64,000 nucleotides of DNA from Paragordius varius (GCA_964247055.1 OZ176052.1:11470001-11534000), one strand, 5' to 3'. Positions 1-64,000 are shown, counted from the first letter of the stretch. The notes: generated by a model from the letters alone, not told the origin. Made by a program: numbers and translations.

Positions 1-3000
1 ATTTAGTTCTTCGAGGATTCCCAAAGATCCCAAAGATCCCAAAAATCAAAAACAACAACTGAATACAGATTCTTCAACAGCTGTTTTGCATCACAGTGGG
101 GGCGCAAAATTTGCTTACCTTGCCGCTCAGCTGGAACAAGCCCTTTACCTCGTGGTACAAACTGAAATGCTCCCTCGAAACTCTCAAATTGACGTTTTTA
201 TCGAGGTTATTTTTCGTAATTTATTGAATGTTAAAATAAATAAATGTAAACTAATCATAATTGTTTTAATTTTTAACACAAAACTGAATTGATTAAAATA
301 TGAAACCAAACTTATTTATTTTTACGGAGACAAAAAGTTTTAAAACTTGAAAATTATAGTAGATTTTTTACCAAAATTTTCGTTTTATACATATTAAGGG
401 TAAGTATAAAATATTGGTCTTACTTTCATAGATGGTTTTATTTGGATACAAATGTTTTTTTGTTACAATTTTGTTATAGAATTATGTTAGAATTGAATTT
501 TTAAATTTTAACTTTAGATTCCAGTTATTATTTCCATTATATATAATACGAAAAATTTATAAAGACACATTAAAATGATGAATTTTTATGTGTTGATTTT
601 CAATTTTTTGAATTTAACAAATTTTCAACTTAAGTTTTTACACGCAGAAGCTTTTGGTTTCGTTTAAAATTTATATTTTTTTATTCTATTCCCATGATTT
701 AGTTAACTTCTTTATGGACTATATTATAGATTTTATGGTATTTGTTAAAACTTTTAAATTAACAATTCCACGATTTATGTCGAATGTTCTAACACGCAGT
801 AGTCTAAAAAAATGACGATTCAAAAAAGTTCTTTTCATGGATTCTAATTCTATAAGGCTTACCGTGATTTTGCTTGACTATGTTTGGTGCATTTCATAAT
901 TGTAAAATATCCATTTTTCATTTTGAAGGATTTTATCTATTTAATGGAAAAAGCTTTAAAGATACTATTATGGCCACGTAGTTCAATAGATAAGATGTTA
1001 GCTTACACACTATTTAAGGGCCTAGCTATGATTAGTTCATTTATTAATAAAACATTCATTAGTGAATATAAATTGGCATAAACGTTTATTAAACATTTAC
1101 AAAGCTAAAATTTATATTATTATCATAAAGTTTTCACATATTTTACAAGTATTATTTTTAGATTCTGCAGTTGGATGGAGGCCTCATGTGTGCATGCGCA
1201 AACGGGGCCTCGTTGGCCCTTTTAGATGCGGGAATTCCCATGGCCGCCATTTTATCGTCTGCAAATATTGGAATACATTTTCAGACGCCTCAATATACAA
1301 ATTATTTTATGGAGGAAAATATTGTAAATGATGATGATACTAATAATTATATGAGCGATAATGATAACAATGATAAAAATAATTTAAATGAATCCAACTT
1401 AAAACTAAATAATCATAATATATATCCAAATGAAGATAATCCAAATTTAAATACTAACAAAACTCTTATCCCCAAAAATGAAAAAATTAATGTTGGCACT
1501 AACAATGAGGCAAAAAATAAAATTAGCACAACTAACATTAATAATGTTAAAAAGTTAATCATTGATAATGAAAAAGGTAAAATTTCAATGGGGGAAAAGG
1601 AGATGGATTTATATTCCTTGGGTACTTTGGAAAAAACATCTGATGATGACGATAAATCTTTTGACGAGGAATCTGGTAATGCATTAATTTGTATACAAAT
1701 GTGTGAATCTTATTAATCGGTAAAATTTGTATAATAGCATTTTTTTTCAAATTGTTAATTTAACTTATATATAATTATTTTAATGTGACTTTTTATGAGT
1801 AACCATTTTATTTCTTATTTTATAATTATTTCGATTAATTTTTTAATCTTGCTGTAAAATTAATAGTTTAATTTCCATTCAATGACTTGACTATTATATC
1901 CCATATTCTATGATTTATATTTATCGTTTTTGTTCAACCTAATTTGTAACAGATGATGAAAACTTTTCCGAATTCGGTAACACCCGATTCCCAGCTGCTA
2001 AGACCAGGGGATCCCTTAAACTCCTGGTTGATCTCAATGGGTTAGAGGACACGGCCACCATGGCCCGCATGGGTCAAACTAAAACAGGTCTAGCCACTTA
2101 TTCCACCATGCCTATCGTAACTGTCCTCGTACGTATCCAACAGAAACCTGGGTTTATAGCACTAAAAATGCTTATACATACTATCTTTTGAAAAGTTTTT
2201 ACAGCTTTTGTTGGCATAAAGTTGTGAATACTTTTTAAAATTTGTAGTATTTTCTGACAATCCTCAATTACCCCAAAGCTTTATGCATGTTTTACCAGGC
2301 CTATTGTAACTGTTCTCGTGCGAATACAATTGAAATAGGGTTTATAGCTAAAAAAACCTGTTTTAAAACGTTTTTTAGCTTTGTTGTCATTAAGTTTTAA
2401 AAGTAGTATGTCTAGGGCTGTTAATGTGCACAAACCTTTCCATATCGTGTTTGTTCTTGTTTGAAACCAACAGAAACTTGGGTTAATAACCTAAATTTTT
2501 TAGTATGCATAAAGTTTTGTTACCTTATTTTTTGTCCTTTTTTAACATATATATGAAAACTTTCTATGGCTATTGTACTATCTATTTTATTACAATAGAA
2601 TCAATTATTATGTTGAAAAGTTTTAAGAATTTTGCTTTAGTAATTTTTGGAAGACTTAACAATTATTGGTACCTTGTTATAACTTTTTAGAAGTATTTTT
2701 TTGGGTTGTAGAGATTACTATTCCATTTTTTCCATTATCACTTTCACAACTAATTTTTATAATTAGCAGGATTTAGAAGTATTCGAAAATTTGATTTTAT
2801 TAATGGCGTCAAGTTGTTTTAAAACTGACCCTCTTTACATGAGAAAGTGTTTTGAGTTTTCATAAGGATCTATATATAATGCAGGCAAGATTTGTTTTCA
2901 AAGAAAGAATTTATTATAAAACTTTAGATAAAAATTATTTCATGGCGTTTTATCATTTTAGTTATATGATAAATCGTATTTTATTTTTCAACATATTAGA

Positions 3001-3294
3001 TCCAAAAATGCACCTCAATCAGGTGATTCCGCATTTACAAAATCATCATTATCTGTTTCCAGCCCTTTAATGAATGAATTATCTTCAGCTGATAATGTTG
3101 ATAATTATTCAGAATTGGTATGCGATGTCATAAACATGGACATTCACAATCGACTTCCATATGATATGATTGATGTGGCCCTAGATGGTGCTTTAAATGT
3201 CGCTAAACGTGTTTATGTTATGCTCGTAACACTAGTCAAAGAATCATATGTTGGCCAAAAGTGTCCACAAAAAATTTGCGCTCCTAACATATGA
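1..3294 (+). CDS. EXOSC4: Exosome complex component RRP41 (RNase PH fold), 5'-partial. Exons <1-205, 1162-1675, 1953-2151, 3000-3294
   Basis: The spliced translation gives ...QLEQALYLVVQTEMLPRNSQIDVFIE|ILQLDGGLMCACANGASLALLDAGIPM...LLVDLNGLED...MDIHNRLPYDMIDVALDGALNVAKRVYVML. These match the RRP41 motifs PRSQIDIYVQVLQADGG...NAATLAVLDAGIPM, LVDL and EMDARL. All introns are GT-AG with consistent phases (0,1,2). Confidence 0.88.
2111..2490 (+). repeat. Degenerate tandem triplication of the EXOSC4 exon-3 end plus donor site
   Basis: The three units are cctatcgtaactgtcctcgtacgtatccaacagaaacctgggtttatagc (2111), cctattgtaactgttctcgtgcgaatacaattgaaatagggtttatagc (2300) and catatcgtgtttgttcttgtttgaaaccaacagaaacttgggttaataac (~2441). 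Confidence 0.75.
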
Positions 3295-3513
3295 TTTTAT
3301 AGATTGGGCAAATTTTTTACAATTACGAATAGTGTAGCTGCTCTGAGTGCAAATAATTTGTTTTGCGCTAAATGATTGTGATTATATGAAATAAATATAA
3401 ATACAATTATTATGAATTTGTTCAATTGCTGCTTTCTTAGATGAAATTTTAACAATGATTTTTTTCAGCCATTTATCTTTATTAAAAAAATATTTTTTTA
3501 GGCAACTTCATAA

Positions 3514-6543: not shown

Positions 6544-9500
6544 TTATGCATAAAGTTCATTGAAAGATGATGTGAGACATCTTTTAAGATCACTGTATGT
6601 CACAATAATCACGTTCCTATTGTCACGTGAGGAGAGCATAACACGCTTTTGGGATCCACAATCCAACTAAACAAAGTTTTAGTAATAAAATGATTAATTT
6701 TTATGTAATATAGAGCATATAATTTATGTATTAAAACAATATAATTATATCTTTAATCTCATTTTTACAATAATATAGTTTTTTGATTTATCAACTTATT
6801 ACAAAAAAAAACATAATTTAACTAAACATTAAACGAATCAATAACCTTTTAGTAATTAAATAATGTTTCATAATTTAAAGTTAATTTAAAATTACCATAT
6901 TGAGTTGATGTACAATATGTGAGATATCCAAAAATGGAATATTTTGGCCTTGATTCTGATTATTTTTATTATAGCTGACATCAGCTGTTTTGGGGATATT
7001 CGTTTCAGGCTCATGTGGGCGGTTGACTGTTTGGTTTAACAGATGATTTGTCGTATTGTTCAAAATATTATGATTATCTGAGCCTACGTTTTATAAAACA
7101 ATATAAATACAACTTTCTCTCTTCATTGTATCATTACTCATAATTATTTCTATAAATCAACTCATAATATTCATAAAAATATATTATTTTTGTTATAAAA
7201 TTTATTATTTTTCTATTGCAATGCATATTGTAGTTTCTTGTAAATAATCAAAAAAAATGGCTAACAATGTTCAAGGGTGGTTATTAATTATGAAATAGTG
7301 TTATAAAATGACTTTTAAAACTTAAAAGATTAGGTATAGTAATGATCAAAAAAAACATCCATTTTCAAAAAATTAAAAAATTCTATTATCAACATAATTA
7401 ATTTGATTTTCAAAAACATTTGATTTAGCTAATTAAGAAGAAAATATTCAACATGATTCAAAATGATTTTGAAAGCATCAAAATCACAAATCAATGGTTT
7501 TATAAAATAATTTTTACTTAAATTTCCCATATATAATGTTTTAAATAGTGAGATAGGCTCTTAAATATCTATTCAATTTTTAAAAACATTACCCAAAAAA
7601 TCAGGTGATCTGGAAGTTGATATAGGGCAAATTTTTTCAGCCAAAACTTTTTTTGATAGAATTTTGGTATGGAAGACGAAATCTCGAAATAACTTGAGCA
7701 AATAACGATCACCTGTTTCAGACCAGCTGACATCTAGTTCATGTCTAACAGAAAAGGTGTGTGGAAAACATTAATACTTTGATAAGCCAAATGGGGAGTA
7801 AAAAAATAAATGCTTATAATTTATATAGCTTTTGATAACTTAGAGCATAAGAATATTAAGTATTAAGAAAAATGCGAAAATACTAAAAAAAATTTAAATT
7901 TTTCTGCTCTTAGTCAAAATGATTGCATTTTTCATCGTACATTTGGTCAAATAAATACAAAAGAAAACGCCATAACTAAATTTATTTTCTATATATCACT
8001 TTTTACAAAGGTTCATGAAAGATACACAATAAATAAAGCTAATAAATATTTAATTAATATTAAGATTAATTAAATACACCGTTAATTTTTCTTTGATAAA
8101 CACAAGATTTTTAAAAATTAGAATATATTACTCGGGTCTTTCTAAAATGGTGTTTAGTTTGCATAGCAATCGAAAAAGGCGCCCGTTCTCCAATTCCTAA
8201 AAATAAAAGTCGAATTGATTTAAAAATTAAAATATAATATAAATATTTTTTAAGGCTCATAAATCATATAAATGAACAAAATAAAAATAACCAAAGTCAG
8301 CTGATTTTTGATATATGCGCTCCTGGTTTCCTCTTTTTCCAGTTGTTCATAAAAACGGGAACCAATGAACGGCATTATATCATTCAATGAACAGCTGTTT
8401 TTGCAGATATAATTATTTGACAAATATTTTTTAATGAAAAATGTTTATAATTAAATAATATATCTAAATTAAAACTAATTAAAATAAAAATTATCCCAAT
8501 ATCTCAAAAAATGAAAACAATAATATAATTATAATTTAACACTTGTTTTATACCTTTTCTGGTTTGGTTGTGTCTCATTATTTAATGGGCCAATTAAATG
8601 TCTAAAAAGAAATAAAATTAATTATAAACACTCAATACTTAAAAAATATATTCAAATACTAATTGTAATAAAAATATTTTTGAAAAATTAACAATAAAAA
8701 TTACCAATAAAATTTTAATATTTTTATCCATTTATAAATAGTAAAAATTAAAGATTTAAGTAAATAAAATAAAATGTAAAAATATAATTAAACAAAATAA
8801 AAAATAACTATAAACAGAATTAAATTCTTCAAATCTTGACTAAAGAGTTTGGACATTAGGGCTTTTTTCAATTCATCCACAAGGTTACAACCCGGATTAT
8901 CAGCTGTTAATATAATTTTGTTAAAAAATAAAATTACTAAATAAAGTAATATACAATAGAGGTTTTATCAATCAGATATATTAAAAGAACTAATAAACAT
9001 ATAAATTTATTGTTGCTTCTTCATTAAAATTTATCTTATAACGTCTATTTTTTTATAATGGATGCATAACCAGCTGTTTTCTTTATAAAAAAATTTGTTA
9101 AAATATATTTAATCATAAATTATTTATTAATATGAAAATATAGGTTAAAAATAATAGTCTTATGTACTGTTCCCTAATTTAAATAAAAAAATTAGTTTTC
9201 TTAAAAAACAAAATATAATTTTTATTAATAAGTTGCTTTTACTATGAATTCTGTATTTATCAACTGATGAGCGGAGTGAATGAATGGAAATAATGTGATT
9301 CATCAGCTGGAGGATTAGGAGTCCAAATGCTCGCAAGTCTTCACTCTTATAAAAATATAAATATTTAATATATTTTTGAAAAAATAGTTTAAAAATTGTA
9401 TTTTTTAAAAATAATAAATAAATTGTAAAAATTTAAAATTATTGAAGAAGACATTGTCGGGTAAAACTGAATATTAAATTAAATTCAAACTAAGCATTAA

Positions 9501-12365
9501 AAAAATATAATTTTTAAACTTAACACATAGAAACAGCTGACAAAAATAAATTAAACCATCAGATTTGAATGTGCTAACTAATTAAATTTAAAGCCTTAAT
9601 CTCTAATATAAATAAATTATTATTCGCGAAAAAAACAGTATTTAGATACTTGTTTTAAAGCGCTCCTATTCTTAGACGCCACCACCTGATCTTCATCGAA
9701 TTGAGTGCTTAGACATTCATACAATCCCAAATAATTTAATTTTATTCTATATGTTATTAAAATTAATTTTATGATATATTTTTTAATGATAAGTATAATA
9801 ATTTAGGAAAATTAACTCTTTTAATAATAATAATAATGATAAATTATTTAAATAATTAGGGTATTTAAAGAAATAGATACCCAAAAAATTAATTATGATG
9901 TATTTGAAAAATAAAAAAAGTTGTTTGATTAACTTATTGGAATTAATCCAAATATTTAAACATAAAAAATTGTTATTTCAAAATAATTAAAAGCTTTTAA
10001 ACGGAGAATAAAAATAAAAAGTATTTTATAAATATTTTTGTAAATAAACTTTTTGTCGAAAACATCAAACAAAACTGTGTGAGCATTTAAACAAATAGTT
10101 CCTCCAACAAAAAACAGCTGATCTCGTTGATATACACCATCTCCGGAATATAATTTTCGCAAAAGGCCACTTAGTTGAATAACCAGGGACCATATAAAAT
10201 TTTCGTTTATTTCTTAAAAATGAATATTTAAAAATTCTCAATATAAAAATAGTAATTAACCTATAAAATTAAGATTAATTTTTACAAAATTATTTTGAAT
10301 AATATCCATAAATAAAAAATAATATAGTAAATATAATTATTTTAAAATGTTTTAATATTAAAATTTTGAGTTTAAACCCATAATAATTTAATAAATTAAT
10401 AACCAAAATTTTGGTGGAAATCAGGTGATTTTTTGCCAGCAAATTCGCATTCCTTTATTTCTTTTTGCATTAATTCGTTGAGGGTAACGTATGATGGCTC
10501 ATATCCATAAATAAATATTAGGGCTAAAAATAATTGGTTAAAAGTATTTAATATTGTAATGAATACTATAAATATTATAATAAAATAATTTAGTTATCAT
10601 AATAATTTACGAATTCGTTCAAATATATATTTTAATTAATTATTTTATAAAAAAAATTACTACATACATGGAAGGGCACTCCCAGAGAAAGATTTTGTAG
10701 AAAAAACTTCAAAAAGTCTCACGGCTGACCCATTATCAAATGATTTCCATTTAGCTATCGATTTTTTTATCCGCATGTTTTTGATAGAAAAATCTAAAAT
10801 ATATGTGTATATACTTTTAACAGTCCATTACCTTTCGGGGTAGTTTTATACCCCAGAGAGATTTGAAATTGTATTACGCCAAATTTAAAAATATATGCTT
10901 TCTTAAGAGTTTTAGGCACATATACAAATTTTTTTAAGTTTTTAATAAAAAAAAATATAATTTTTAATAAGTATATATAAAATTGAGGTCTTAAAATAAA
11001 AAATATAATTGTTTATATTTAATTAAAATACTTGGAATACGAACCATACAAAACGTTTCGGAATTTAAATTATTTTTTGCGGAAAACAACTGTTTTTGGG
11101 CGAAAGAGAGGACGCTTTTCGGAATTTGATTAAAATTTCCTAATCTGGCTCTTTCTGAAAAAAATAAATTAAAATTTGAAAAATTTAAATTTTCAATGAT
11201 ATCTGAAAAATCAAAAAATTATATAGCTAATTGTAAAAACAAATTTAGATGGAATAGCTACTTTAATTTAGTTCAAATATAAAAAATCAAGAAAATTTAA
11301 AAACAATAATATATACGGATTTAAAAATGAAAAATTGCTAAAAATATAAAAGATAAGTATGAACAAAATTACATTTTTGACGTGTAACTTTGAAAAATAA
11401 TTACAATAATAAAAATTATACGAAAAAAATGCAAAAATATAAAACAAATATTTTTTTTCCAAAAGACAACCATAATTTTTTAAAACTTAATATTTCCCTA
11501 TATAAAGTATTTAATTAAAATATTAAAATATATTAATTGTGTTATCAATAGGGTTGTGCATTTATGCTTTTTTAAAAAAGTCCAGTCAGACCCAATCAGA
11601 CCATGGTCATGACCACTTTTTACTTGTATAAATATTGGATTGTGAAAATAATGTTCGGATGAGACTTGCGTTTCACTAATTATTTCATGCTTTTTCTTAA
11701 AAACTTGTATTATACTTTTTTGTTACTTATTATTTACAAATATTTTGAATCAAATTTAATCAAGAATTTTGTTTTCAAAATTTTGCCGCATGTTTAAAGC
11801 CTTCTGAATCTTCAAATACATAGCTTTTAACACTAGATATATCAAATAAAATTTTACCTAGTTTGTTTTATAACTTTCTTTCAACAGTAAAATATCAAAA
11901 TATAAAATATTTTTTCATTTTATTGGTTCAAATATATGGAATAATTGCATATTTTGCAAGGTTGTTTGTTTTTCAAAATAACTGGATATGCTTAAATGCT
12001 AATGTAATAAGGATGCATGTTTAACAATTTTATATTGTGAAATAAGCATTAAATATTTAATTTTATATTATTTAAAAAATATATTAAAAAAATAAATATA
12101 ATACTATCTTTCTTCCAAATAAAATTTATCGGCAATTCTTCAAAAAAAACAGCTGTTTTTTAAATGACATGGTCAAAAAATATGGTCACTTGACCTGGTC
12201 AGCACAACCCTAGTTATCAATATACAACTCTATTCTATATTTGCTTCAAACAATGAGTATTAAATAAATCAAGATTTAAAAAATAATATAAAAAATATTT
12301 GTCTATATAATATTACGTTTTGTCCGTATAATTTCAATAATGTAAAGTTTTAAAAGTTAAAAGCG

Positions 12366-12402
<37 letters not shown>

Positions 12403-15400
12403 TAATTTACCATAAATTGAACATTTTGTTAGCTGTTCCGCAATTTGGCCCAAAATAACATTATTATTGTAATAATTATTTCCAATATTGATTTTATTAT
12501 TGATTACATTAAAATTTTTAATGTTTGCAAAAAAATTGGCTTTCAAACTTTCCAATTCTTTTTCTATATCAGTATTATTTGCATTATTATAAATATTTGT
12601 CGATGTTGTTTGATAAAATATCTCAGTTTTTTTATTATCCATCAGCTGTTGTTTTGGAATGGGGAGAGGGCGGATATGTCTTAGACTTTGATCACATGTG
12701 ATTTGTTGATTTTGGATTCTTAGGAGTGAAAATGCAGACCAGTGTTTTGGAGTTGTCATGGCAACAACGGAGTTTGCAGAAAAATTTTGGGTTGCGAAAT
12801 CAAAAACATCCGATGATTTTAGAGGAATCAAATTGTAATATCGACTAAAATTAAAGTATAGTAAAATTATGATTAAATAAATTAACATTAAATTTAATTA
12901 TACATTTAATTTTACATTTTTGGATTATAAGCAATTCGATATAAATGATACATTTATATAATTTTACCTATACTATAGATAATTAAAATTGATATATAGA
13001 TAAATAATGACTCAACTTTTCTATGACAAGATTAGCATATGGATTGTTGCCATGGTGATTCCCGATTCCATTTGCACTAAGCAACTGTTGTCGCTTATCA
13101 GCTGTTTGAGCATTTTTCTGAAGCAAATAAGCCCTGAGATTTGGGTCCACGAAAAACCGTGAATATTGACCATCACCTGATTCTAAAATTTGATATATAT
13201 ATATATATATATCAGGGTTTAGAACGATTCAAAAAAAGGGAACCGGAACCGGTTTTTTTCATTTATAACTGGTTCAATTTTCGGTTCCTGACTTTTGATC
13301 AAATGATTTTCTTACAAAATATTTATAATAACAATAATACAACCAAAATATTAAGTATTATAAATCAAACAATTTATTATAAATTGCGAAATATATAGTG
13401 AAAGAAATATAGTGTAACATAATAAATGAAACAAATTATAAAAATATAATAGGAAAATGTATAAGTTCAAAGGTATATAAGGAGTGTTAAATGAAGTATG
13501 GCATATAAAAAAATCTTTATTTTACTTTAAAATTTTTTGCACCAAGCAATTTGCTGGTGAAACTCTTCTCCGGTCTGAAAATAAATTAAGGGTAAAAAAA
13601 CTCTTTTCAACGAGGACCAATATATAACATGTGTATTTTAAATAATCTTGAGTTAAGACTATTAGTTTTTTTAAAAAAACAGCCGAATCGCCCAAAATTC
13701 AGAGAGTATCGGTAATATAATATTAGGCGCTTAGTTGTAGGTTTGAAGTTTAATATGTAGTGGTACAATCAAATTTAAATAATAAAATAAAATTTTATTA
13801 AAATCATATGGGAACCAGTAATTAAGGGGGTGGAACCGAAACCGCGTTGGTTCCATCCCTATGGAACCGGTTCTTATTATTATGCTTTTACGCTCAGTCG
13901 CACGTATGGCGCCGAAGCAATGAAGTAATTTTTTTTTACTTTAATTAACCTAATTTTTGGATCAGGGTGACTCAACAAGGAGAGTATTAAATTGTTAATA
14001 TCTTTATATATTATATGTGTCATTTTTTGTTTTTTTCTGTTGTCCTTATGTTCTCTTATCTACATAAATTTAAGATAATGTACTAAAATACAAACTACTT
14101 CAAGTATCTAAATTCTTTCAAAGGTCGGTAGATATAATTCCTTAGGTCGAGTTCGACCTTTTAGAAATTAAAATGACCAGCTCTTCACTTGCCTCTTTCC
14201 CATGCTATTTCCTCCATTTACATATCTACAAGATTCCTTCTTTACCCAGCCATCTTAACATACATCGGTGTTCCTTTTTTTCCCCTTAAACTTTTCCGAA
14301 AATTAAATCCTTCCCAAGAGATGTAATTCTTAAAATGTGACCAATGTACGTGAACATCCTTTTTATTATAGCTCCCATCAAGTGGCTCTCAATATTTAAT
14401 CTTTCTCCTATTGTTTCATTACCGTGTCAGACCATCTTATATTCAACATTCTCCTCCAACACCACATTTCAAATGCTGCTCTCCTTTTTTATCCATCAGT
14501 TTTAGTGTCCGACTTTCATCAGCAGAAGTCGCTACCGGAAAAACCATGCCTTTTATTACTCTCATTTTTGTTTTCATAATTATATCTTTTTTCCATAATT
14601 TAGTCAACTTGCTCGCAGTTGACTTCCCTGATGCTATGCGGCGTTTAATATCTGGCTAGGAGCCGTTGATGTCTTTACCTAAGAATAGGATTTCATTTAC
14701 TACTTCTACTGGGGTGTCGTCTATAGTTATAATCGGTTTATTTTCTAATAAACTCATAACTTTGGTTTTCTTTGGGTTGAGGTTCAATCCATATCTTTTG
14801 CTTTCATCTCTTACTAACCTTATCATATTATTTAAACTTTCTACATTATCTGCGATCAGCGTCGTGTCATCTGTGAAACTTAGATTGTTAATCGTTCTTC
14901 CTCCTATGGTTAGGCTTTCAGTAGCTTCATCTACTTATCTCATGATCATTTCTGTATAAATATTAAGCAAGTATAGTGTGAGGCAACATCCTTGTCTTAC
15001 ACCTTTCTGTTATTCAAATTTCGTTAGTTCTGCACAGTGGGGTTGAGAAATTCCAGATTGAAACATGTAAAGAATATCAAGTGGAATTAGTTATATGTTG
15101 TATTAATTATACCCAGGCATTTGACTTGATTAACCATGTACATTTATGGTAAAGTTTGGAAGCAATGGGAATTACAGAAAAGCTTATAACCTTGCTTAAA
15201 AATTTATATAAACACCCAAAATCCATAATACGAACCCCGCTGTGCTGAACTAACGAAATTTCAATACCAAAAGGTGTTAGACAAGGATGTTGCCTCACAC
15301 CATACTTGTTTAATATTTGTACAGAAAATATCATGTGAAAAGGAGATGAAGATACTAAAAGCCTAACGATAGGAGGTAGAAGGATAAACAATCTAAGATT

Positions 15401-18400
15401 CGCAGATGACCCGACGCTGATCGCAGATAATGTAGAAAGTTTAAATAATATGATAAGGTTGGTAAGAGAAGAAAGTAAAAGAAATGGATTGAATCTCAAT
15501 CCTAAGAAAACCAAAGGTATGAGTTTATCAAAAAACAAACATAATGTAAGCTTTAGACGACACCCAGTAGAGGTAGTAAATGAAATCCTATTCTTAGACA
15601 GATATCAACGGCTCCTAGCCAGATATTAAACGCCGCAAAGCATTAGGGAAGTCAACTGCGAACAAGTTGACTAAATTATGAAAAAAATGAAATGCATGGT
15701 TTTTCCGGTAGCGATTTCTGCTGATTAATGTCGGACACTAAAACTGAATGATAAAAAAGGAATGCAGCATTTGAAATGTGGTGTTGGAAAAGAGAATGTG
15801 GAATATATGATGGTCTGACAAAGTTAGGATTGAAACAATAAGGTAAAAAATAAAATATTGAGAGTCTCTTAATGAGAAAATAAAAAAGTTTAAGTACATT
15901 GGGCACATTTTAAGAATTTGTTTTGGGAAAGTTCAAGAAAAACTAAAAAAGGAAGACCGATGTTAAGATGGCTGGACACTGTAAAGAAGGAATCTGGTAG
16001 ATGTGTAAACGAATTGAAGGAAATAGCATGGGAAAGAGACAAGTGGAGAGAACTGGTCATTTTAATTTTCAAGGTGTCGAACACCTAAATTACCTGCCCT
16101 ACCTACCTATATCAACAAAAACTAAAAATTACTAAATTAAAATTTACCCAATCAGCTGTTATTAATTAATTTAAACAATCAGTGTTTATAAATTACTAAA
16201 GTTTTTGGATATTTTCATAATTGTATGCGAAAAATTTATTTTTAGTATCAGTGTTTTAAAAAATAAAAATATGTAAAAATCTTTGATTTATCTTAGAGAG
16301 ATAATTATTAAAATAATATGTAAAATAACCTGTATATATATTTTGAGAATATTCGTAATTCCTGAAATCAGCTGTCGATGGATTTGAATAAATATTTAAA
16401 TTGAAGTGTGGCGTCTGTTTTTTATATATTAATATTTTTAAAATTATTTAAAAATATATTGATTATAAAAACTATATATATGTAAAATAATAATAAATGA
16501 TAATAAATAACTTTTGTTAAAAATTTTTTATATATAATTAGAAAAATTTAATAAACCATTGTTTCGATTTGTAAACTTATGGGAAGTTCGCAAGACGCAA
16601 ATTTATTTGATAGATTTTCAACAGCTGATTGCAAATATTTTTCCTGAAAATCTTGAGAATCTAAAAAATAAATTTTATCAAACAAATTAATTTGAACATG
16701 TAATATTCATAACGGGTATATTAAATATTTTAGAAAATAGATAAATTAAAATTATAATTTTCCAATAAAAAAAATATATGTTGTATTATATTAATTAATG
16801 GTAAATTTGTGTTAAGAATTTTATAATACAGGTGGAAATTAAGTTTTGAAAATTTTTATTAAAACTAATTTATGTAATAAAATAAAAAAACTAAAGGAAA
16901 TCTAAAACTGCGATTTCATATCATTTTTTACCACAATAATCTTATAAAAATATTATTCAGTTTTTAATTTTATATCACGATAAATTTTCTAAAATAATTA
17001 AAAAAAATGAAAAGTATAGATTAAAAATACTTGAATTATTTAAACGCTATAAAACTATTACAAAATTATTTAGTATTTAAAAATTTTGTAATAATCTCAC
17101 TTTGAAACATCATGAGAGAATTTTCCAGCGAATCAGCTGATTCCAATCCAACAAAGTTTGTTGCAGATAAAAGAGGAGTCATAGCAGGTGTTAATGGAAA
17201 AGTTTCAGTCTGATATGAATGATTGAATATTGTTATTAAATTAAAAATTATAAATTTTGTTTTAAAATTTATTTTTGGTAATATTATTTCAAAAGCTACT
17301 AATATATTAATATGTTTTTTGGAATATTAATGACAAAACATATTACATAATAAAATATTTAAGACACGGCTTATTATATAAAAAGATTTGATTGGCATAA
17401 TGTGTAAACGTAAAGTAAAAATATTGTCATAAATTAACCAAAAGTCCTTTTAAAGACATGATATTATAAGATATAGGTGATTCCTTTAAAAATAATTACA
17501 ATACATTGTCCATGATTTGATACTTATTGGAATAAAAATTATAAAAAACGATATACCAAAAAATTATTTGGTGATGTTTGTCTTAGGAGGTCAATGACCT
17601 GTTTGGTTGTTTCCGTCAGCTGATCGTTGCCACCGGCAACGGCTTTAATTGACGATATATCATCTATACTTAGCAATGGTTGATTGTCACCATATGGATG
17701 ATTTATATTGGGCTCAAATAGGCCCCCGTTCAAAAACAGCTGATCTTCCCCATTAACTGTTGGATTTGTATTAATATTGTTATTATTATAGAAATAAGTT
17801 GTCCCGCCAATATTTTCCTAAAAGGGATATATATAAAAAATATATATTTTTCAAACATAATTACATTTTTTCCTTTTTTTATTTTGTTATCATTATCAAA
17901 CATTTTTTTAGAATTTTCGTTCTTTATCTATATCATGTTTATAAAAAATGATTGTTTACTAATAGTAGTTTTATCTGGACCATATTTAAAATATATTAAA
18001 TGTTTTGAATTAACGGCAACAAAAATATCGAATTATCGGTTACTAGGGTCATTTTAATTGCAAATAGGGAAAAAAATTCATACTTGCTCACACACTCATT
18101 TAAATTTTTTATCCTTATTTTCAATTAAAATGTACCCATATAAACAATAATATGACTCGCTGTAAACTGTATGTTTTAACAAAATTAAAAGGTAAAATCC
18201 ATACATCATAAAAAAGATTTACTAAATCTGATAACTGTTAAAGAAATAAATTGCTATTTCAAAATATTTTCAACAAACTAATGTGATATTCAATTTCATC
18301 AAAAAAATGAATGATTATCATTTGTTAGATTGTCAATAACTGTAAAAATTTAAATTTTAATCAGAAAATGAAATAATAATGAAAATATTTTATTTTAAAA

Positions 18401-21673: not shown

Positions 21674-21738
21674 TTTTAAAGTCTAAAATTGAAACAGATT
21701 CAAAAGAAGATTTAAATAAAGAGTTAATTTTTAAATCA

Positions 21739-21741
<3 letters not shown>

Positions 21742-31172: not shown

Positions 31173-34100
31173 TTCAGCCTTAGTCCTGTTCTTTATTGGA
31201 ATGATTCGATAATTATTATCTTCTGTAGGCAAAAAAGCAGACATACATCTCTTCTTTCGTGATTCCCCCTAAAAATAAATAAAAATTTTTGTAAAAAATG
31301 GAACACATAAATATATCAGCACACAATAAGCCTTAAAATATGTAATGCGAAATAAGTTGAAATATGGGGCAATTTAGTTAGTAAAAAACTTAATCTTTTT
31401 AATAAGAACCATATAAAATCTCATACTCTTTTTTATCGCTTATATAGAAGGTTTATGAGATGCTAAACCCCATATTCTACAACCCCGTATATTAAACACT
31501 AATATAGGATACATGATAAAATGCCTTTGACAATCAATTACTTTTTAAGTACCAAATTACGCTATAACTTTCCAAATTTTTACTGTATATATGAACCTTA
31601 ACATCTATTCGAATTCCATTTAACTTTTCAAGGTAAACTGGCCTCCTTGTGAATTGCGTCCAACTGTAAGACCAATCGATGACCCATTGTCCAAAAAGTT
31701 CGCCTTTCGATATCAAGAAAATGTTTCTAATAAAAAAAACTGTAAGCACATAAAAAATTTACTCATTCGTCATAATTAAGACATCCTTTAAATCGGAGCT
31801 TAAGAAAGCGTGGTACATATATTTCTGGTCCAAATGTCCTTTCTCCACAGCCTATCGAAAAATAAAATAAATATATTACAACTACGGAAATGCGGGGGTA
31901 AATTATATGAATATAAACATTTATTGTAATTTGATCCTGATATTTATCATAAATACTTGGAAAAAATAATTATACATAATATCATATTCAATCAATTTTC
32001 GATAAATTTTTTATAATTATAATATATTATCGTTATTTTCATTCCGATTATATGTAGTAATAGAGTAATAATGTGTTTCATCTTTTTATTAAATTATTTC
32101 AATCACGTAGCTTTGATAATAAACACATATGAAATTAATGCTTTCAAGTAAGATATAGTAAAATTTAATAAAGGTTATAAAAAAATTCTATCAATTTGAG
32201 TTTATAAAGTACGTTAACTGTTGAATATTTTAAAAGAGTGATAACATAATATTTTTATTCTTACGCGGAAAATTTCATATCCTTCCGCCTCATTGAAATC
32301 GTAAGGGCGAACAATTCCATCTCTGTGGATTATTCTTCTAGGTCTTAATCGGTGTATATCCTCCGATTGTTCGGCAAATCTAATATTATTAAAAATAAGA
32401 CCTTGTATAAATTTTTGAAAATTATTTGTAATAAAGAAAAAATTTTGGTGGGAAATCAAAAATGTTAAAAAAAATTTTTCTATATTTAATTCAATAAAAT
32501 TCCATTTTTTTTACTATTAAAATAATATTTTTTGGTCATAAAACCCACCTTATAATTTGAATCTCTTTTATATTGAGCAATCAAATTTTTATTATTAAAA
32601 TTAAATTTATTTTTTTAACAAAAAAACTTACCTTTTAATCCCCTGGAATGATGAGGAGGCAAAATCAACGACCCCAGACGTGGGGCGAGCTACAACGCCT
32701 ACGAGACCTTTTCCAAAACCTTTAATAAAACCGGAGGCCCCCTCTTGTTTAGCGCCTTCGAGGGGTTTTTTCACTACGCCGGTCAAACCTTCGTAGAAAC
32801 CCATCACAAGACCTAATATGTTCAAAATGTCCAATATATTTTAGGTTTTAAAATGTTTTTTTCGATTATCAATTTCATAAGAAAGTTTTCTATAATAATT
32901 TATTGATTTATTGAATGTATATGTAGCACGGGGTAGAAATAGAGTGATCACTTTAGCAACTTTTTACATAAAAAATATTTATTATCTGAGATAATGTATA
33001 TTAGCTATTCTATTAAAAATTTAAAAACGATAACTTAAATGCCCGATTAAAAATCTTAATCATCCTGAATTATCAAAAAAAAATATATTATAATTAACCT
33101 TTTCCTCCACGGGCTACACCCTCCTTTAAATCAGATGGTTTTTTGTTCATATCCTCACGACGACTTTTTTGATAATCTTGATCTAATGTAAGAGCTGCAA
33201 TACCCTTTCCAAGAGTACCTATCATATAGTTATACGAAATTCAATACATCCGTATAACAACACTGCATAAAATTTGTTAAAATAAATTATAAAAGGTAAA
33301 ATAAATAATATAATAAAACCATGTTGTCTAACTTTTAATTAATTTATTATCTTATGGAGAAATGCAATATAGCTGAAAATCGAAAACACATTCAATATTA
33401 TATTTCAGAATTTTAATGTTTTGAGTCAATTTCAATAATCATAAAACATGGATTTTTACAAAAAAAATAAAGTTTACTCAAGCTGTAACTTTTACTTTAC
33501 ATATTATCTAGCCTAAAGGTAATGATATTAATAAAACCGTTAACCTTTCTAAATTTTTCGTTTCATACATTTATTTATCAAAACATGCATTAAATCACTA
33601 TTTCCTACAAAGTCCCTAGTGTGATAATATTCATCAAATGCATTTTTATTATTTTTAGACAAAAATTTAACCAGTTATTCGAGAAACAGCGCCAGCGGCC
33701 CCACCAACAGTATGGCCAAAAAGGCTTCGAACCCCAAAAGCTAAGCCTTGAGCAAACTCTTCTGGTCCTTGGATAGCGCCTTGATAAGGTTCGTAAAAGA
33801 GATCACCCATTCCTTCCGTGAAACCACGAATCAAACCAAAAGGATTACCTAACACATCAAGACCCAAGACCAAAACATACATTTGTTTAAGGGCTTGTGC
33901 AACGTAATGTTTGGTAACTTCGTCTAAAGAATAAAAATATGTGTTTCAGCCAACAATAAAATCAAGAAAATTTTATAATGATGTAAAAAACGTTAAAATT
34001 TAGCTCGTATAATCATGCTAATATAAATTGATAGTCTTAATGAATGGTTGTGATTTAAGAAAGCAATAAAACCTGTAAAAAAACCCAATATTATATGTAA

Positions 34101-37100
34101 AAATTTTAAATAGTCCATATAAAATGTGGGAAAAAAGTTAAAAAGGAACCATAGTGTAAAAAATTAAATTTTTGCATGTATTCAGTGATTCAAATAACTT
34201 GAGTCACGCACAAGGAGTGGGAGTAAATGCGATAGTTCGCTTATCCAAGATAGTTTATGGTAAAAACTCTAATAGTCCTTATATAATGTAAAAGATAAAA
34301 GATTATATAAATAAATTAATCATAATTTACAAAGCATCCTTTAATTATCAGTACAAAATAAATCTTACGGACAAGTTGAGATTGGGTGTAAAAGCGATAA
34401 GTCCGCTCAAAGTAACCCAATTTGAAAACGACATCATCAATATCTGCAAGTGTAACTCCAATGCTCTGCAAAAGAAAATTGAAGGCCGCTGATCGAACAA
34501 TCGTATTATTTGTAGTGCTTCCTGAACTACGATCTAAAAAATGTAATTTATAACATGTAAAAATAATATCTGTATGTATTGTAATGTAATCAAATATCTT
34601 AGAGGTATCAAAAAATACTTGAATCCATAGAGCTTTGATTTAAGGGGGATGGAGAAGGTGACATTCTACCAAACTCCCTTGAACCCGATTGCATTGAAGA
34701 TGAATGTTTTATTGTATTTGAATTTCCTAAACAAAAAATCATATTTTATATTTGGAAATAAGCATTCATAAAATTAAGTAGCTTTGACATTTCATAAATT
34801 TCGAAAACAATAACCATAATAGCATACAAAAATCTTATTTATTCCAATATAACCCGTTTTGGGTAGCAAAATAAAGAATAAAAATGTAAATTGTTAACCA
34901 CTCATTTCAAATTATAGGTAACATAGATAAAATAAAGGAACTAAAATATAGTTTTATATATAAAATATTAGTCTTCTACAGTTAAGATTCTATTCATTAA
35001 TTTTTTTTGTATATAATTGTATAATTAGATTTCTTAGCGATTTACAAAAATGGAGTTAAAAAAATAAATTTAAAGGTCAAGTTTCGGTAACAATTTCGAA
35101 GCATTAATATCAACTATTTAATGTACTAGATAAGGGTAATGGCGATTGACTCCTTCCCGTTTCTACAATGTTACCACTCTTTTCTTCCTTGAGTGTTCCC
35201 CCAGGTTGTGAAGCAGGTTTTGTGTTTTGCAACGAGAAACTTAAATGAATCTTGATGGGTGAAAAGTGTAAATATTCGTAATAAATCTTTGGCCCAGTCG
35301 ATGTTTTAGCTTTATCGGCCGCAACGCGTACCATATCCTGACAAGCGGCTTTAATATCGGTTTCATAACTTTCATGCTATTTACACGAAATACATTTTTT
35401 ATAGAGTTTGTCAAAAAATTGATAAAATTCATAGTAAAATTTACGGACTGCAATTAGATAACGGAATATGCAATCCAATATTTGAATCAATAAAATTTAT
35501 TGAATTAGACGAAGTATAGTAATATATAAACAGTAACACTTTTTTCTTGGATAGAAGTGAACAATACGCTAAATTTAGAAAGGATCTGAATGTTTTGTTT
35601 AAGACACACGTTTATAAAATACTCTATAATATATAATAAAGGCATAAAAAATCTATGAATAGATTAAAATGGATTTGCATCATATATCTAAGAAGAGGGA
35701 ACTCTGAAAATTACCGTGTTTTTCGCAAAAAAAGATTTGTTTTAAAATATTATTTTCGAAAAAATTTTTACAATAGATATTTCGTCTTGATTCGATGAAG
35801 TTAGAGACGTAGCTATGGGTTGTGTAAAAAATGTAACTATATTATCGATAAATCCTTGGTCTGCACGTAAAAACATTTCTTGCATCAAAACTTTGAAATA
35901 TTTGATTTGTGGAATCTAGAAGAAACAAAAAATTTATAAAAACAAAAAAACCTTGTATGAAAAAGAAATAATATATTTCACCCCTCCATGTTGAGAGTTG
36001 CGTTTAAAGAGACTGAGCTCAATAAGTGGTTTAGAAACGGGCAAACTATCAGAAATCGATTTCGAAACCGGAAATATTCCAAAAACCACAGGAAATGTGC
36101 AGGCCATTAATTGATCATCAATCTGAATGCGAAAATAAAATTAATAAATTATAAAGGGAATGGAAATGGATAAAATGCACCAAAATAATTCGTGAAAAAA
36201 ATTGTTTACTTGAAGTTTATGTAACTTTAAGTGTAAATGAAGTTGATAGATTGAAGCTCTGTACTGGATCCACACACTTGGTCTAAATGATCTCCGTAAT
36301 CCATAATAGTAGGATATGTCGGTTAACTCACTAAAATGTTATAATTTTTCAAATGCATTCATACCTTAAATTATTGAGGTTATTCGATTTCAGTTTTATA
36401 AACGCCATATTATCCAAATCAAGAATTAAACCAGACTTTGAAAAGATATTGTTGGGTACGGTTGCCAAAACATTATTGTAGCTGTATTATAAAATATGGG
36501 TTCAAATTAATCATGTATATCAAATATGATCCCTTTAAATGATATCTTTAAACCATGAAATTTGAGCATTATAAAGTTTAGAAATTAAAATATAGTAAGG
36601 GAAAAGTGAAAAAATTACAAAATTTATATAAGACGTCAACTTATTAAATAAAAGGCTTCAAAGCAGAAATCTTTTAAAACCCTTATATAAGATAAGTTTG
36701 ATAGTTCGAAATCCCTCCAATACAACAACCGAAATAGTGGCGAAAAAATAGGGTTTTAAAATATGGACAAAATTTTTCTCTATCCAACCTCAATTTATCC
36801 TATTAAAATAATTTAACAATCGTATAATATATAAATTGCTTGTGTTATCAATTTACATCTTTATTTCCTACTTTATGGTTTGAAACAATATCATTATATA
36901 AATTAAGTTTCAATAAGTATGGTTGTCTTTTAGAAAAAAATATTTATCTTTATATTTTTACGTTTTGTCCGCATAATTCCATTTTTACTGTAAATATATA
37001 AGTTAATTGTTCTGAATAATAAATACAGGAATTTAACTTCACGCTTTACTCATTATCCTACAAAATTTTGTCACTATACTTTGCAATTATTTGCGGAGTT

Positions 37101-39383: not shown

Positions 39384-39429
<46 letters not shown>

Positions 39430-42400: not shown

Positions 42401-43615
42401 TACAAATCTAAAATGACCCTTTATTAATTCAACAATTTATATGCACATAAAAATTTGTGAAAATTATTCGATAAATTTGTTATAAAATATTGTAAAACCG
42501 AAATATAAAATGGTTCTTCTTGAATATCGGAAAGAGCAGGGCATGATATAACATATTTAAGTGGGTTGTTAGCCAACAATTGGGTGTTATTCCAATCAAT
42601 CCCATCCTTTGAAATGTCATAACTGTATGGCAGATATGTATGAGTATCATGGATAATTATAACTTAAACCATAAATTTTTCCGTTTTTTAACAAATAATT
42701 AACATTTTATTCATTCTTCACCAAATAATGAATCCTTTAATTAATATGATATGTAAAATCGCAATATCTAAACACGAAAAATTAGTATACATCCTTACTT
42801 TAAAGAACTCGGTTTGAAATAAAAACGCGACAAATTTGAATTTATGATTGAAATGGGAATGCTCCAATTAGCATTACTTTCCAAACAAACTAATTTGACC
42901 AGGGAGGACTTAGGAACGGAGCCAGCTGTTTTCTCATGCATTTGGAGCACATATATTTCCATGGGTATGGCAAAATTGTTTACAATCTAAGATTAATATA
43001 TGTACAATTTATAACCTCACAAACTTTTCAATTGAAATTTTTTAATTTTTATAGCAAATAATTACAATTTTGAATTTGGTATATAAATTGTAATAAAAGG
43101 GAGAATAAAGCTTATAAGATTTAGATACTCGAAACATATTTAAATAACAAAAATACAATTTATATTAACGTTAAAAATTTATAAAACGGTGTCGCTATAA
43201 ACTGCAAGAAATCATCTTTTTACGAATAACAATCAATATTGCTATTAAGTTTCATTGGTTATTAATCAACCCTAGTTTAATTTTCTTTTTAATTAACTTG
43301 GCACCTAACCAAGTAGGATTGTCAACAAAAATGAATACACTTTCAAAATTTTTACAAATGAAATAGGAAAAAAAGCTTAATAGGACAAACAAACCTTAAC
43401 AGGAGTTTGTATGGTAATATGTTTAGTTCCATTCTGGGATATGACATCACATATAATACCATTGCTAAAAGGTCGTGTGGCCTGTTGAGATGCGGAGGAT
43501 TGCGTTGAAGCACTTGAGAGTTTGCGGGCAGCGTCTGATGAGATAGGGATTTCAAAATAGCTCTTTCTAACTTGATTTATTCCAACAATGCGATTAACGA
43601 ATCCATTTAAGGGAA

Positions 43616-43651
<36 letters not shown>

Positions 43652-63393: not shown

Positions 63394-64000
63394 CTGAATT
63401 TTTTTGCAGATAATATTTAATAAAAAATATGGGATGTTTTTTGTAATTTTCATATAGGAATAAAAACTAATGGCTCAGTACAATGGAAAAGACGTCAAAT
63501 GACTTATTTTAAAATATACAGTATTAGTCAGATCTAAAACGATAGAAAAAAGTGTACCGCCATTTGATGGCGAATCCTCATACAAATAATGATGAGGATG
63601 ATTAATATTAGGAAAAAAATATTTTAAAGTATATGGATTTTGGTAGCGAAATTGAGAGAATTAAGCATTATATTTTATAAAATTTATTTAAAATTAAGCT
63701 AAAATGTGTATATAATAAAGATTATTATTATTATTATTATATATGCATTTGAGCTTATTTTTAATTAAATATGGTTATGTTCCAATTTAAATATAAGTAT
63801 ATAAAATTTGAAAAAGTGTTTTAAATTTAATTTATATAGAACTACAATTATAAAATAATAAATTAAAAAAGAAAGAGTAAAAATTAAAATTATAAGGACA
63901 ATATAGTAAACAAACATCTATTTCTTATATAGCTATTCAAAATGATAGATATCGCTTAAAAAATCCATCTTTTAAAGTATATGGTTTTCTTCACAAAAAA

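Follow-up and report, generated by a model that had tools for sequence, protein, structure and literature searches.

An array of palindromic CAGCTG elements in PAN3 and a convergent exosome-subunit gene of the hairworm Paragordius varius

Results

Genes of the window

The window analysed here is a 64,000-nt stretch of Paragordius varius DNA (GCA_964247055.1 OZ176052.1:11470001-11534000). The host genome is a very AT-rich invertebrate genome. Using our own splice-aware model, the coding body of PAN3 was placed at 6544..17817 on the minus strand, with 17 coding exons and a CDS of 2289 nt. A Pfam Pan3_PK match at 7576-7770(-) and PDB matches to PAN3 of Drosophila, human and fungi bore out the initial annotation of this gene as PAN3. 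This model did not recover the first exon(s) or any zinc-finger exon. An inverted pair of non-LTR retrotransposon fragments (14450..15793) lies inside a PAN3 intron. Convergent with PAN3 is the gene for an RNase PH-type exosome subunit (3..3375, plus strand), which is truncated by the window start and has a weak Pfam RNase_PH match. VPS13 (31620..63576, minus strand; 64 modelled exons, 9567 nt CDS) served as the internal negative control. The CpG o/e is near 1 in introns of the window, a value consistent with CpG methylation being scarce or absent.

CAGCTG is concentrated in two genes

CAGCTG occurs 25 times in the window, while dinucleotide-preserving shuffles gave 2.0 ± 1.3 copies with a largest value of 7. 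Eighteen copies lie at 6982-17742, four at 78-3091 and three past 18 kb (26983, 37794 and 42923); 22/25 are within the two arrayed genes, PAN3 and the exosome-subunit gene. For the interval 6982-17742 base composition predicts 0.39 copies, an excess of ~46x. CAGCTG ranks first among all 6-mers for enrichment in the PAN3 region, and its count exceeds composition and Markov expectations. The asymmetric CAGGTG/CACCTG was found seven times in the same interval (7602, 7710, 9683, 10422, 13174, 16829 and 17185) and is outnumbered by CAGCTG 18 to 7. These recounts agree with the initial annotation, which had reported 18 and 7 sites in the interval, fewer than one CAGCTG expected across it, and just three copies in the next ~46 kb. 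A literature search returned no paper tying CAGCTG to hairworms.

Positions of the PAN3 copies

Under the 17-exon model the PAN3 copies comprise 11 exonic sites, 2 that supply the AG of a splice acceptor and 5 intronic sites. The earlier tally was 12, 2 and 4. The acceptor sites stand, and the difference is the copy at 16369..16374, which is intronic in our final model and was part of a low-scoring candidate exon (S-T-A-D) in our first. An E-box had also been placed in or next to 14/19 exons; our model gives 12/17 when CAGCTG, CAGGTG and CACCTG are counted.

Exonic copies use all three reading frames. Glutamine-leucine is encoded at 17737..17742 (GAT CAG CTG TTT, D-Q-L-F; full 10-mer, AACAGCTGAT), 17617..17622 (GAT CAG CTG ACG, D-Q-L-T), 12643..12648 (CAA CAG CTG ATG, Q-Q-L-M; full 10-mer), 10115..10120 in the pseudokinase part (GAT CAG CTG TTT, D-Q-L-F; full 10-mer), 9304..9309 (CTC CAG CTG ATG, L-Q-L-M) and 8298..8303 (AAT CAG CTG ACT, N-Q-L-T). 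At this last site human PAN3 reads E-D-L, so that the Leu is conserved and the Gln is not. Alanine is central at 17134..17139 (TCA GCT GAT, S-A-D; ATCAGCTGAT), 16622..16627 (TCA GCT GTT, S-A-V), 13099..13104 (ACA GCT GAT, T-A-D) and 6982..6987 (ACA GCT GAT, T-A-D; exonic in the model), all of which are full 10-mers. The remaining exonic copy, at 7724..7729 (GTC AGC TGG, V-S-W), may be incidental because its flanks are not W. Its Trp is conserved across all aligned PAN3 proteins; before it, fungi have Ser, and fly and human have Thr.

Full 10-mers also span the splice acceptors at 8901..8906 (aacAG/CTGATA, junction at the slash) and 8392..8397 (aaacAG/CTGTTC). Besides 16369..16374, the intronic copies are at 16153..16158 (full 10-mer, ATCAGCTGTT), 12150..12155 (full 10-mer, AACAGCTGTT), 9534..9539 and 9071..9076. 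Measured against local composition, exons (46-54x) and introns (73x) show a similar fold excess, the PAN3 introns having 17.8% GC. Copies extend from the first through the penultimate modelled coding exon. The ~9 kb upstream of that first exon (17743 to 26982) are free of CAGCTG, which is not how promoters or enhancers are usually laid out.

The unit is a 10-bp palindrome

The repeated unit is a two-fold symmetric 10-bp palindrome, AWCAGCTGWT, with AWCAGGTGAT as a minority form. PAN3 contains 11 exact and 12 one-mismatch copies, compared with 0 exact and 1 one-mismatch copy in the 33 kb of VPS13; the whole adjacent 46 kb (spacer plus VPS13) holds 0 exact and 3 one-mismatch 10-mers. Counting exact and one-mismatch copies together, PAN3 has ~23 in ~9 kb of host sequence, or ~1 per 400 bp, and site spacing is irregular to random (CV 0.91), without phasing. 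Among half-site flanks, A is found at -2 in 34/44 and A or T at -1 in 38/44, and the left and right flank spectra of the CAGCTG sites are alike. The bases at -1/+1 are self-complementary in 7/17 pairs, that is, independently chosen, which is the pattern expected from two independent half-site contacts.

CAGGTG/CACCTG is co-enriched in the PAN3 CDS (6 vs 0.90 expected) with identical AW..AT flanks. Exonic aatCAGGTGat lies on the plus strand at 7602..7607 and 10422..10427. On the minus strand are aaaCAGGTGat (7710..7715) and gatCAGGTGgt (9683..9688), both exonic, and aatCAGGTGat at an exon start (13174..13179). Relative to transcription the asymmetric variant is oriented 4:3, and its flanks are common to both orientations. 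Symmetric flanks, together with a variant that is flanked alike both ways, place the signal at the level of DNA and not RNA. One-mismatch neighbours of CAGCTG are not depleted in PAN3, and CAGTTG/CAACTG, which a transition produces, is in excess (6 vs 3.0).

All-against-all BLAST of site flanks (+/-60 nt) detected similarity over 10-14 nt around the motif, the exception being one pair of overlapping query windows. The sites share the motif alone and are not copies of a repeat. An origin from a dispersed repeat or transposon was rejected on this result.

Codons and amino acids are altered in PAN3

The PAN3 CDS has 11 CAGCTG, whereas 5000 rounds of synonymous codon shuffling averaged 1.15 and never exceeded 6. 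The initial annotation had named this null as one that could undo its claim of a DNA-level code written through exons; the observed count was never reproduced, and the claim survives. The copies are frame independent and overprinted on coding sequence. PAN3 back-translated with VPS13 codon usage is expected to have 0.78 copies. Q-L dipeptides occur in PAN3 at 2x expectation, and 6/11 of them are encoded as CAGCTG, although the share of CAG among Gln codons is 30% and that of CTG among Leu codons 11%. [ST]-A-[DV] tripeptides are at 11x expectation. Motif pressure in PAN3 overrides codon preference and shifts amino-acid content. The motif frequency exceeds what protein and codon usage allow, as in dual-use coding sequence (duons).

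Neighbouring loci

The exosome-subunit gene has 4 CAGCTG (78, 128, 1992 and 3086) in 1248 nt of modelled CDS, where the shuffle expects 0.41, and one W-flanked CAGGTG, at 3020. The array is not the peculiarity of PAN3 that it had been taken for. VPS13 was correctly described as poor in CAGCTG despite ample exonic sequence: its CDS has 2 copies, both without W flanks, against a codon-shuffle null of 1.8, every codon and amino-acid measure is at expectation, and its introns (22 kb) have no CAGCTG. PAN3 and VPS13 are similar in exon GC and CpG o/e but differ in CAGCTG with P = 7e-7 for CDS and P = 3e-9 for whole loci. The array is gene specific. Because no W-flanked copy was found in VPS13 or the 13 kb transposon-rich spacer, a region-wide or chromosome-wide mark, judged locally within the window, is disfavoured. 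The retrotransposon insert in the PAN3 intron, whose arms differ by 6-12%, has no CAGCTG where ~11 would be expected at PAN3 equilibrium; the mark is thus not carried by the insert. Transposons in the window carry no CAGCTG.

Discussion

A putative homodimeric bHLH array

The best reading, to which we give about a 50% chance, is that PAN3 and the exosome-subunit gene carry an array of putative homodimeric bHLH sites, most AP-4-like, that sets transcription or chromatin state. Copies would have arisen point by point rather than by duplication and would be maintained at the DNA level, in exons and introns alike. Each copy would be bound by a homodimeric bHLH protein reading CAG half-sites, most like AP-4 (TFAP4/Cropped), and binding along the array would let a single factor cover selected genes over the full length of their gene bodies. 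Its effect on transcription or chromatin state would be additive and depend on copy number. It could work in either of two ways, as a series of enhancers inside the gene or as a tag on the gene body, encoded in the sequence, to which chromatin modifiers are recruited. Protein binding, the bHLH identity of the protein and the effect of binding are inferred.

AP4 forms homodimers only and binds CAGCTG and, less often, CACCTG (PMC3698521, PMC7914591). The PAN3 sites have the CAGCTG core, two-fold symmetric flanks and CACCTG/CAGGTG as a second form. Their AWCAGCTGWT flanks presumably match the AP-4 preference, AWCAGCTGWT / NAHCAGCTGD in motif databases. HLH-11 is identified in an earlier paper as the AP-4 homologue of C. 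elegans. It also binds CATATG (PMC3113581), which shows no excess in PAN3 (3 vs 10 in the remaining 46 kb). HLH-1, the MyoD of C. elegans, binds as a homodimer to CAGCTG, CACCTG and CAACTG, and a preference of this type fits the PAN3 array about as well. The sites were initially assigned to class A bHLH or Snail proteins. Palindromic CAGCTG with symmetric flanks dominates over CAGGTG/CACCTG, and the array does not follow the pattern of Snail/ZEB zinc-finger or class A bHLH heterodimer sites, whose main core is that asymmetric form. Symmetric AWCAGCTGWT is a better fit to an AP-4-like homodimer than to these heterodimers or zinc fingers.

Other explanations

We consider it unlikely that a sequence-specific system of DNA modification, repair or conversion acts on the palindrome, and that copies accumulate by drive and not by usefulness. 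A CAGCTG methyltransferase coupled to short-patch repair, on the model of Dcm/Vsr at CCWGG in E. coli, would be one such system and site-biased gene conversion another; if the system worked solely in certain germline chromatin, gene specificity would follow. CAGCTG is well known as a restriction-modification target (PvuII), the equal fold excess in exons and introns is expected of a per-site bias, and drive can override amino-acid preference in the way seen here. However, one-mismatch neighbours are undepleted, with CAGTTG/CAACTG raised, and the degenerate A-W flank specificity is typical of a transcription factor rather than a restriction-type enzyme. Drive also sits poorly with co-enrichment of the non-palindromic CAGGTG, with an untouched VPS13 of similar exon GC and CpG o/e next door, and with an insert whose arms differ by 6-12% and that has none of the ~11 copies expected at equilibrium.

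A symmetric binding protein with a structural or chromosomal job rather than a transcriptional one is likewise improbable. It could anchor loops, load condensin or cohesin, pair homologues or exclude kinetochores on holocentric-type chromosomes, or it could tag 'self' genes against silencing, as the periodic A/T clusters of C. elegans germline genes do. The DNA-level evidence (symmetry, codon shuffle, variant, 10-mer contrast) applies equally to such a protein, but the known pairing-centre and dosage-compensation motifs span megabases or chromosomes and the PAN3 mark ends at the gene boundary. Random spacing without phasing also argues against it. In its favour, the array extends over all of the unit but stays out of the promoter, transposons in the window are without copies, and AP4 interacts with CTCF (review, PMC7914591).

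An element that acts in RNA has a poor chance of being correct. Such an element might enhance splicing from within exons or introns, or might let self-complementary copies pair inside one pre-mRNA, helping short exons to be recognised among very AT-rich introns. Every copy is within transcribed sequence, 13/18 are in or at exons, two provide the acceptor CAG, and 12/17 exons have an E-box-type site. Introns are nevertheless enriched like exons relative to composition, and the asymmetric variant occurs in both orientations, where an RNA element would be strand specific. Self-complementarity at -1/+1 in only 7/17 copies implies that pairing is not under selection. VPS13, with 64 exons and equally AT-rich introns, does without the motif.

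We dismiss chance, base composition and codon usage as sources of the array, and equally a repeat, whether at the amino-acid level or dispersed in the DNA, as the shuffles, the composition and Markov expectations, the synonymous shuffle and the VPS13-codon back-translation are all exceeded, three frames are used, flanks are unrelated, and the VPS13 control differs for both CDS and whole loci.

A possible gene-body mark

Within the bHLH reading there is a bolder and rather unlikely possibility: that the hairworm paints a subset of genes, from first to last coding exon, with homodimeric bHLH sites as a sequence-encoded gene-body mark. The painting would be dense enough to rewrite codons and residues, and the mark would take over what in other animals falls to DNA methylation or to chromatin marks on gene bodies. 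It might, for instance, license expression or keep cryptic initiation down where transcription units are extremely AT-rich. PAN3 and the exosome-subunit gene are neighbouring housekeeping genes sharing an array that adjacent VPS13 lacks.

Comparison with known systems

In human cells 52% of AP4 ChIP sites are intragenic, and repressed targets are richer in CAGCTG motifs (PMC3698521, PMC7914591). The PAN3 array resembles AP-4 targets in its CAGCTG core, its weaker CACCTG/CAGGTG form, symmetric flanks as for an obligate homodimer and, given that human AP-4 sites are mostly intragenic, its location. In human and fly a target carries a single site or a few, located near the promoter or within introns, whereas PAN3 has ~2 per kb through coding exons.

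The 10-mer consensus of the Drosophila motif E-box1 is presumably AWCAGCTGWT, the same as the PAN3 element. CAGCTG 'E-box1' is a motif of Drosophila housekeeping promoters (PMC8842121). E-box1 (Ohler motif 5) shares the CAGCTG core and, in the fly as another ecdysozoan, goes with genes of broad expression (PMC8842121, PMC1779564). Fly promoters have one copy, with a peak just upstream of the start site, whereas PAN3 copies are spread over an 11 kb gene body. A core-promoter E-box1 layout was rejected for PAN3, which has zero CAGCTG at 17743-26982, upstream of its first coding exon, and copies that run through coding exons.

Duons and homotypic site clusters are similar in that a factor-type motif in CDS biases codons and many copies occur per locus. 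They differ in degree: 11 copies in 2.3 kb of PAN3 CDS is 10x the synonymous null, and residues are altered. A homotypic cluster is an enhancer of a few hundred bp, while the PAN3 array spans the whole unit.

The intron-mediated-enhancement (IME) motif of Arabidopsis and the germline A/T clusters of C. elegans are, like the array, short, redundant, additive DNA signals inside a subset of transcribed genes. The periodic A/T clusters are confined to introns and are not palindromic factor-type sites, and neither is IME, a promoter-proximal signal. The Arabidopsis motif TTNGATYTG is reported to be active outside introns as well (bioRxiv 10.1101/269852). The PAN3 array may by analogy have a kind of mechanism in common with these systems; membership is not claimed.

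MSL recognition elements of Drosophila and the rex and pairing-centre motifs of C. elegans are likewise clustered short motifs that recruit a chromatin complex. The initial annotation had suggested a platform of this kind for PAN3, with an intragenic super-enhancer and a transcription-factor sink as other candidate roles. They mark whole chromosomes or megabase regions irrespective of gene, whereas the PAN3 mark stops at gene borders and skips VPS13.

Distribution of CAGCTG in the window

The window was searched for CAGCTG and for its minority form, CAGGTG/CACCTG. CAGCTG occurs 25 times, against 2.0 ± 1.3 (largest value 7) in dinucleotide-preserving shuffles of the 64 kb. Eighteen copies lie in the PAN3 interval (6982-17742), four lie at 78-3091, and three are found in the other 46 kb. 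These three (26983, 37794 and 42923) all lack W flanks, that is, A or T directly beside the core, on both sides. CAGGTG/CACCTG was found 15 times (5.8 expected), with 7/15 copies inside the PAN3 interval. GC content ranges from 20 to 34% in 2-kb steps and is about 26% for the window as a whole, which agrees with the published value for Gordionus montsenyensis, 26.93%. When all 6-mers were ranked by enrichment in the PAN3 interval, CAGCTG came first and the next few words were its own sub-words.

The initial annotation had counted 18 CAGCTG and 7 CAGGTG/CACCTG in the PAN3 interval and 3 CAGCTG in the other 46 kb, with less than one CAGCTG expected in PAN3. Its counts and coordinates are correct, base composition predicts 0.39 copies, and the E-box excess is confirmed and is stronger than had been stated. 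The array is not peculiar to PAN3, as the convergent gene for an exosome subunit carries 4 CAGCTG, compared with 0.41 in codon shuffles (maximum 3). With two arrayed genes and one bare gene, VPS13, in the window, a gene-by-gene property fits.

Gene models and identities

Genes were modelled with our own splice-aware model using codon log-odds, GT-AG sites and phase continuity. Recognisable peptides of PAN3 and VPS13 served as training data for the log-odds. PAN3 runs from 17817 to 6544 on the minus strand with 17 modelled coding exons (2289 nt), and VPS13, which is also on the minus strand, from 63576 to 31620 with 64 modelled, mostly short exons (9567 nt, 3188 aa within the window). The RNase PH-type exosome subunit gene (3-3375, plus strand) is convergent with PAN3 and is cut by the window start. 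The models are approximate, and where exons are weakly conserved their edges may be misplaced.

PAN3 was placed on the minus strand by a Pfam match to the Pan3 pseudokinase and by PDB matches to Drosophila, human and fungal PAN3. Single exons aligned against PDB gave two usable PAN3 alignments, and two others had no match. A phmmer search with a 54-aa PAN3 pseudokinase exon returned only two matches, both low-complexity artefacts, while the 163-aa open frame of PAN3 at 12400-12888 (minus strand) had no matches in a word-indexed search. The first exon or exons of PAN3, including the zinc-finger exon, were not found in 17800-31500. Long asparagine-rich low-complexity insertions are present at 1171-1716 (plus strand) in the exosome subunit and at 12400-12600 (minus strand) in PAN3. 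Both are open frames far over chance length for AT-rich DNA, and their host proteins are otherwise conserved.

The 10-bp palindrome

The actual unit is larger than the 6-mer core and is a 10-bp palindrome, AWCAGCTGWT. When every site is read as a pair of half-sites, 34 of the 44 half-sites have A at position -2 and 38 have A or T at position -1, with no sequence information beyond position -2. The same base spectrum is seen on the left and on the right, and the bases at -1 and +1 are independent of each other (7/17 pairs are self-complementary). The exact 10-mer occurs 11 times in the PAN3 interval and WCAGCTGW 15 times; neither occurs in the last 46 kb. One-mismatch 10-mers number 12 in the PAN3 interval, 1 in VPS13 (33 kb) and 2 in the spacer (13 kb). 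The minority form follows the same pattern, as 5/7 CAGGTG/CACCTG copies in PAN3, and the exosome-gene copy at 3020, read A-W-CAGGTG-A-T or a near form; copies outside the arrayed genes mostly lack the A-W...A-T flanks.

Within PAN3, CAACTG/CAGTTG is slightly above expectation (6 vs 3.0) and CATATG is not enriched. The sites in PAN3 have no regular spacing (CV 0.91, P = 0.47). TTGATATA or TGATATA lies 8-16 nt after four E-box sites (7602, 8298, 10115 and 13174) on the plus strand, and GCAAAT is raised near E-box sites (7 vs 0.85). TGATAT(A) and GCAAAT were dropped as a second motif element because their excess was only marginal once corrected for 4096 words.

Placement of sites and effects on codons

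By our model the 18 PAN3 copies of CAGCTG comprise 11 exonic sites, 2 that supply an acceptor AG and 5 intronic sites, classes that may move by one or two since the exon boundaries are approximate. The earlier division was 12/2/4. The two acceptors agree and the exonic and intronic numbers do not, probably because of the site at 16369, which an initial, over-predicting model placed in an exon and the final one in an intron. At the acceptor-spanning sites (8392-8397 and 8901-8906) the AG of the palindrome is the acceptor AG (..aacAG|CTG..), so a change there hits motif and splicing together. Exonic sites occupy all three reading frames. Six are read CAG CTG (Q-L), four are read xCA GCT Gxx (S/T-A-D/V) and one is read AGC TGG (S-W). 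The last encodes a conserved Trp, has non-W flanks and is possibly incidental.

CAGCTG exceeds composition expectation 46-54-fold in PAN3 exons (35.9% GC) and 73-fold in PAN3 introns without the transposon (17.8% GC). The similar excess in both argues for a property of the unit's DNA and not of exons per se. VPS13 has 2 copies in exons (38.1% GC) and none in 22 kb of introns (22.0% GC). The contrast between PAN3 and VPS13 is significant for the CDS (P = 7e-7) and for the whole loci (P = 3e-9).

A codon-shuffled null, proposed as a check in the initial annotation, did not reproduce the count. The PAN3 CDS contains 11 CAGCTG against a synonymous-shuffle mean of 1.15 (maximum 6 in 5000), while the VPS13 CDS contains 2 against 1.81. 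For CAGGTG/CACCTG the values were 6 vs 0.90 in PAN3 and 1 vs 2.8 in VPS13. Back-translation of PAN3 by the codon usage of VPS13 gave 0.78 CAGCTG.

The protein sequence is also affected. Compared with residue-frequency expectation, Q-L dipeptides number 11 vs 5.1 in PAN3 and 12 vs 14.8 in VPS13, and they are coded as CAGCTG in 6/11 and 1/12 cases, respectively. The use of CAGCTG for Q-L goes beyond ordinary codon usage, since in PAN3 Gln is coded by CAG in 30% of cases and Leu by CTG in 11%. [ST]A[DV] tripeptides are eleven-fold over expectation in PAN3 (5 vs 0.44), with the motif present in 4/5, and number 3 vs 3.0 in VPS13. As an illustration from a single aligned case, human PAN3 shares the Leu at site 8298 but has Asp in place of the Gln before it.

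Repeats, transposons and CpG

A repeat family was rejected as the source of the sites, as BLAST of 60 nt on either side of every site found only the motif itself in common. Rfam detected no RNA families in the whole window, so the motif does not represent arrayed promoters of any known type of small-RNA gene. CpG observed/expected is 0.80 in PAN3 exons, 0.83 in VPS13 exons and about 1 in introns. VPS13 thus shows no sign of CpG depletion, and since the two genes are alike, such depletion was discarded as a way to mark out a class of methylated genes.

Between PAN3 and VPS13 the spacer (18-31 kb) is full of transposon remnants, chiefly at 19960-28000, and its one CAGCTG (26983) has no W flanks. 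It contains reverse-transcriptase pieces (23208-24450, minus strand), a hAT-type transposase with a dimerisation motif (26619-27983, minus strand), and a foldback element (24546-24600 and 24768-24825) whose arms are 21-bp minisatellites, mutual reverse complements. A solo 21-bp array of five copies lies between the two convergent genes (5088-5193).

In a PAN3 intron a non-LTR retrotransposon fragment is duplicated in inverted, head-to-head orientation (14450-15006 and 15270-15793). The two arms are 88-94% complementary and could make a long hairpin in PAN3 pre-mRNA. The insert has reverse-transcriptase and C-terminal motifs and a GC content of 34% vs 18% in the intron around it. It contains no CAGCTG, with about 11 expected at the host's fold excess. 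A fast regional process was therefore rejected as the array's source, and the process that built the array was slow, or inactive on the insert. That the sites are a product of modification, repair or conversion drive we consider unlikely. If true, such a drive would parallel, in an animal, the way very-short-patch repair shapes oligonucleotide frequencies in bacteria.

Interpretation of the array

Symmetric flanks, independent half-sites, tolerance of CAGGTG and indifference to strand and frame are together the trace expected of a homodimeric DNA-binding protein. We give a probability of about 0.5 to the reading that the sites form an array for a homodimeric, AP-4-like bHLH protein recognising CAG half-sites, which would influence the transcription or the chromatin of the entire unit. 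Both the binding and its effect are inferred here. A bound protein with a structural or chromosomal role would leave sites as well, and is about as improbable as the repair or conversion drive. An element acting in RNA is more doubtful still. Introns are as enriched as exons (73-fold vs 46-54-fold), the asymmetric variant lies four times in one orientation and three times in the other, and the base pairs at -1/+1 show no preference for self-complementarity (7/17); most likely the array is not an RNA element. An artefact is scarcely credible.

The initial annotation had read PAN3 as also serving as a DNA platform, with its E-boxes taken as class A or Snail-type sites. A DNA-level, gene-specific signal is supported and extends beyond PAN3, while a platform function is hypothetical. 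The class A/Snail identity is probably wrong, given a palindromic unit with symmetric flanks.

The density and extent of the array, as a cluster of factor sites and as dual-use codons, are unprecedented. We found no paper linking CAGCTG with hairworms and no description of gene bodies saturated by CAGCTG. If bound, the array would be an unusually clear natural regulatory code overlaid on a protein code, strong enough to produce twofold Q-L and eleven-fold [ST]-A-[DV] in a conserved housekeeping protein, and would show how an extremely AT-rich genome picks out particular genes. The disputed 'duon' idea becomes directly testable through a single 10-mer, an all-or-none contrast of adjacent genes and a countable codon effect. 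For Nematomorpha, to our knowledge a phylum nearly without functional genomics, the array offers a first way into gene regulation.

Comparison with known systems

AWCAGCTGWT is the preferred 10-mer of AP-4 in motif databases and is also Drosophila promoter motif 5 of Ohler; we felt that these matches were leads and not tests. A literature search for the string itself gave no match. In flies CAGCTG is a promoter-proximal motif of housekeeping promoters (PMC8842121, PMC1779564), whereas the P. varius array has no copies in the 9 kb upstream of PAN3's first modelled coding exon. The C. elegans AP-4 homologue HLH-11 also binds CATATG (PMC3113581), a word not enriched in P. varius PAN3, and the C. 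elegans MyoD homodimer HLH-1 binds CAGCTG, CACCTG and CAACTG. These preferences caution against a firm factor name. Among known factors AP-4 is the best fit. It forms only homodimers, which recognise CAGCTG and, at lower frequency, CACCTG; in human cells 52% of AP-4 sites are intragenic, motifs are more numerous in its repressed targets, and it is able to recruit HDAC, SWI/SNF and G9a/GLP complexes (PMC3698521, PMC7914591).
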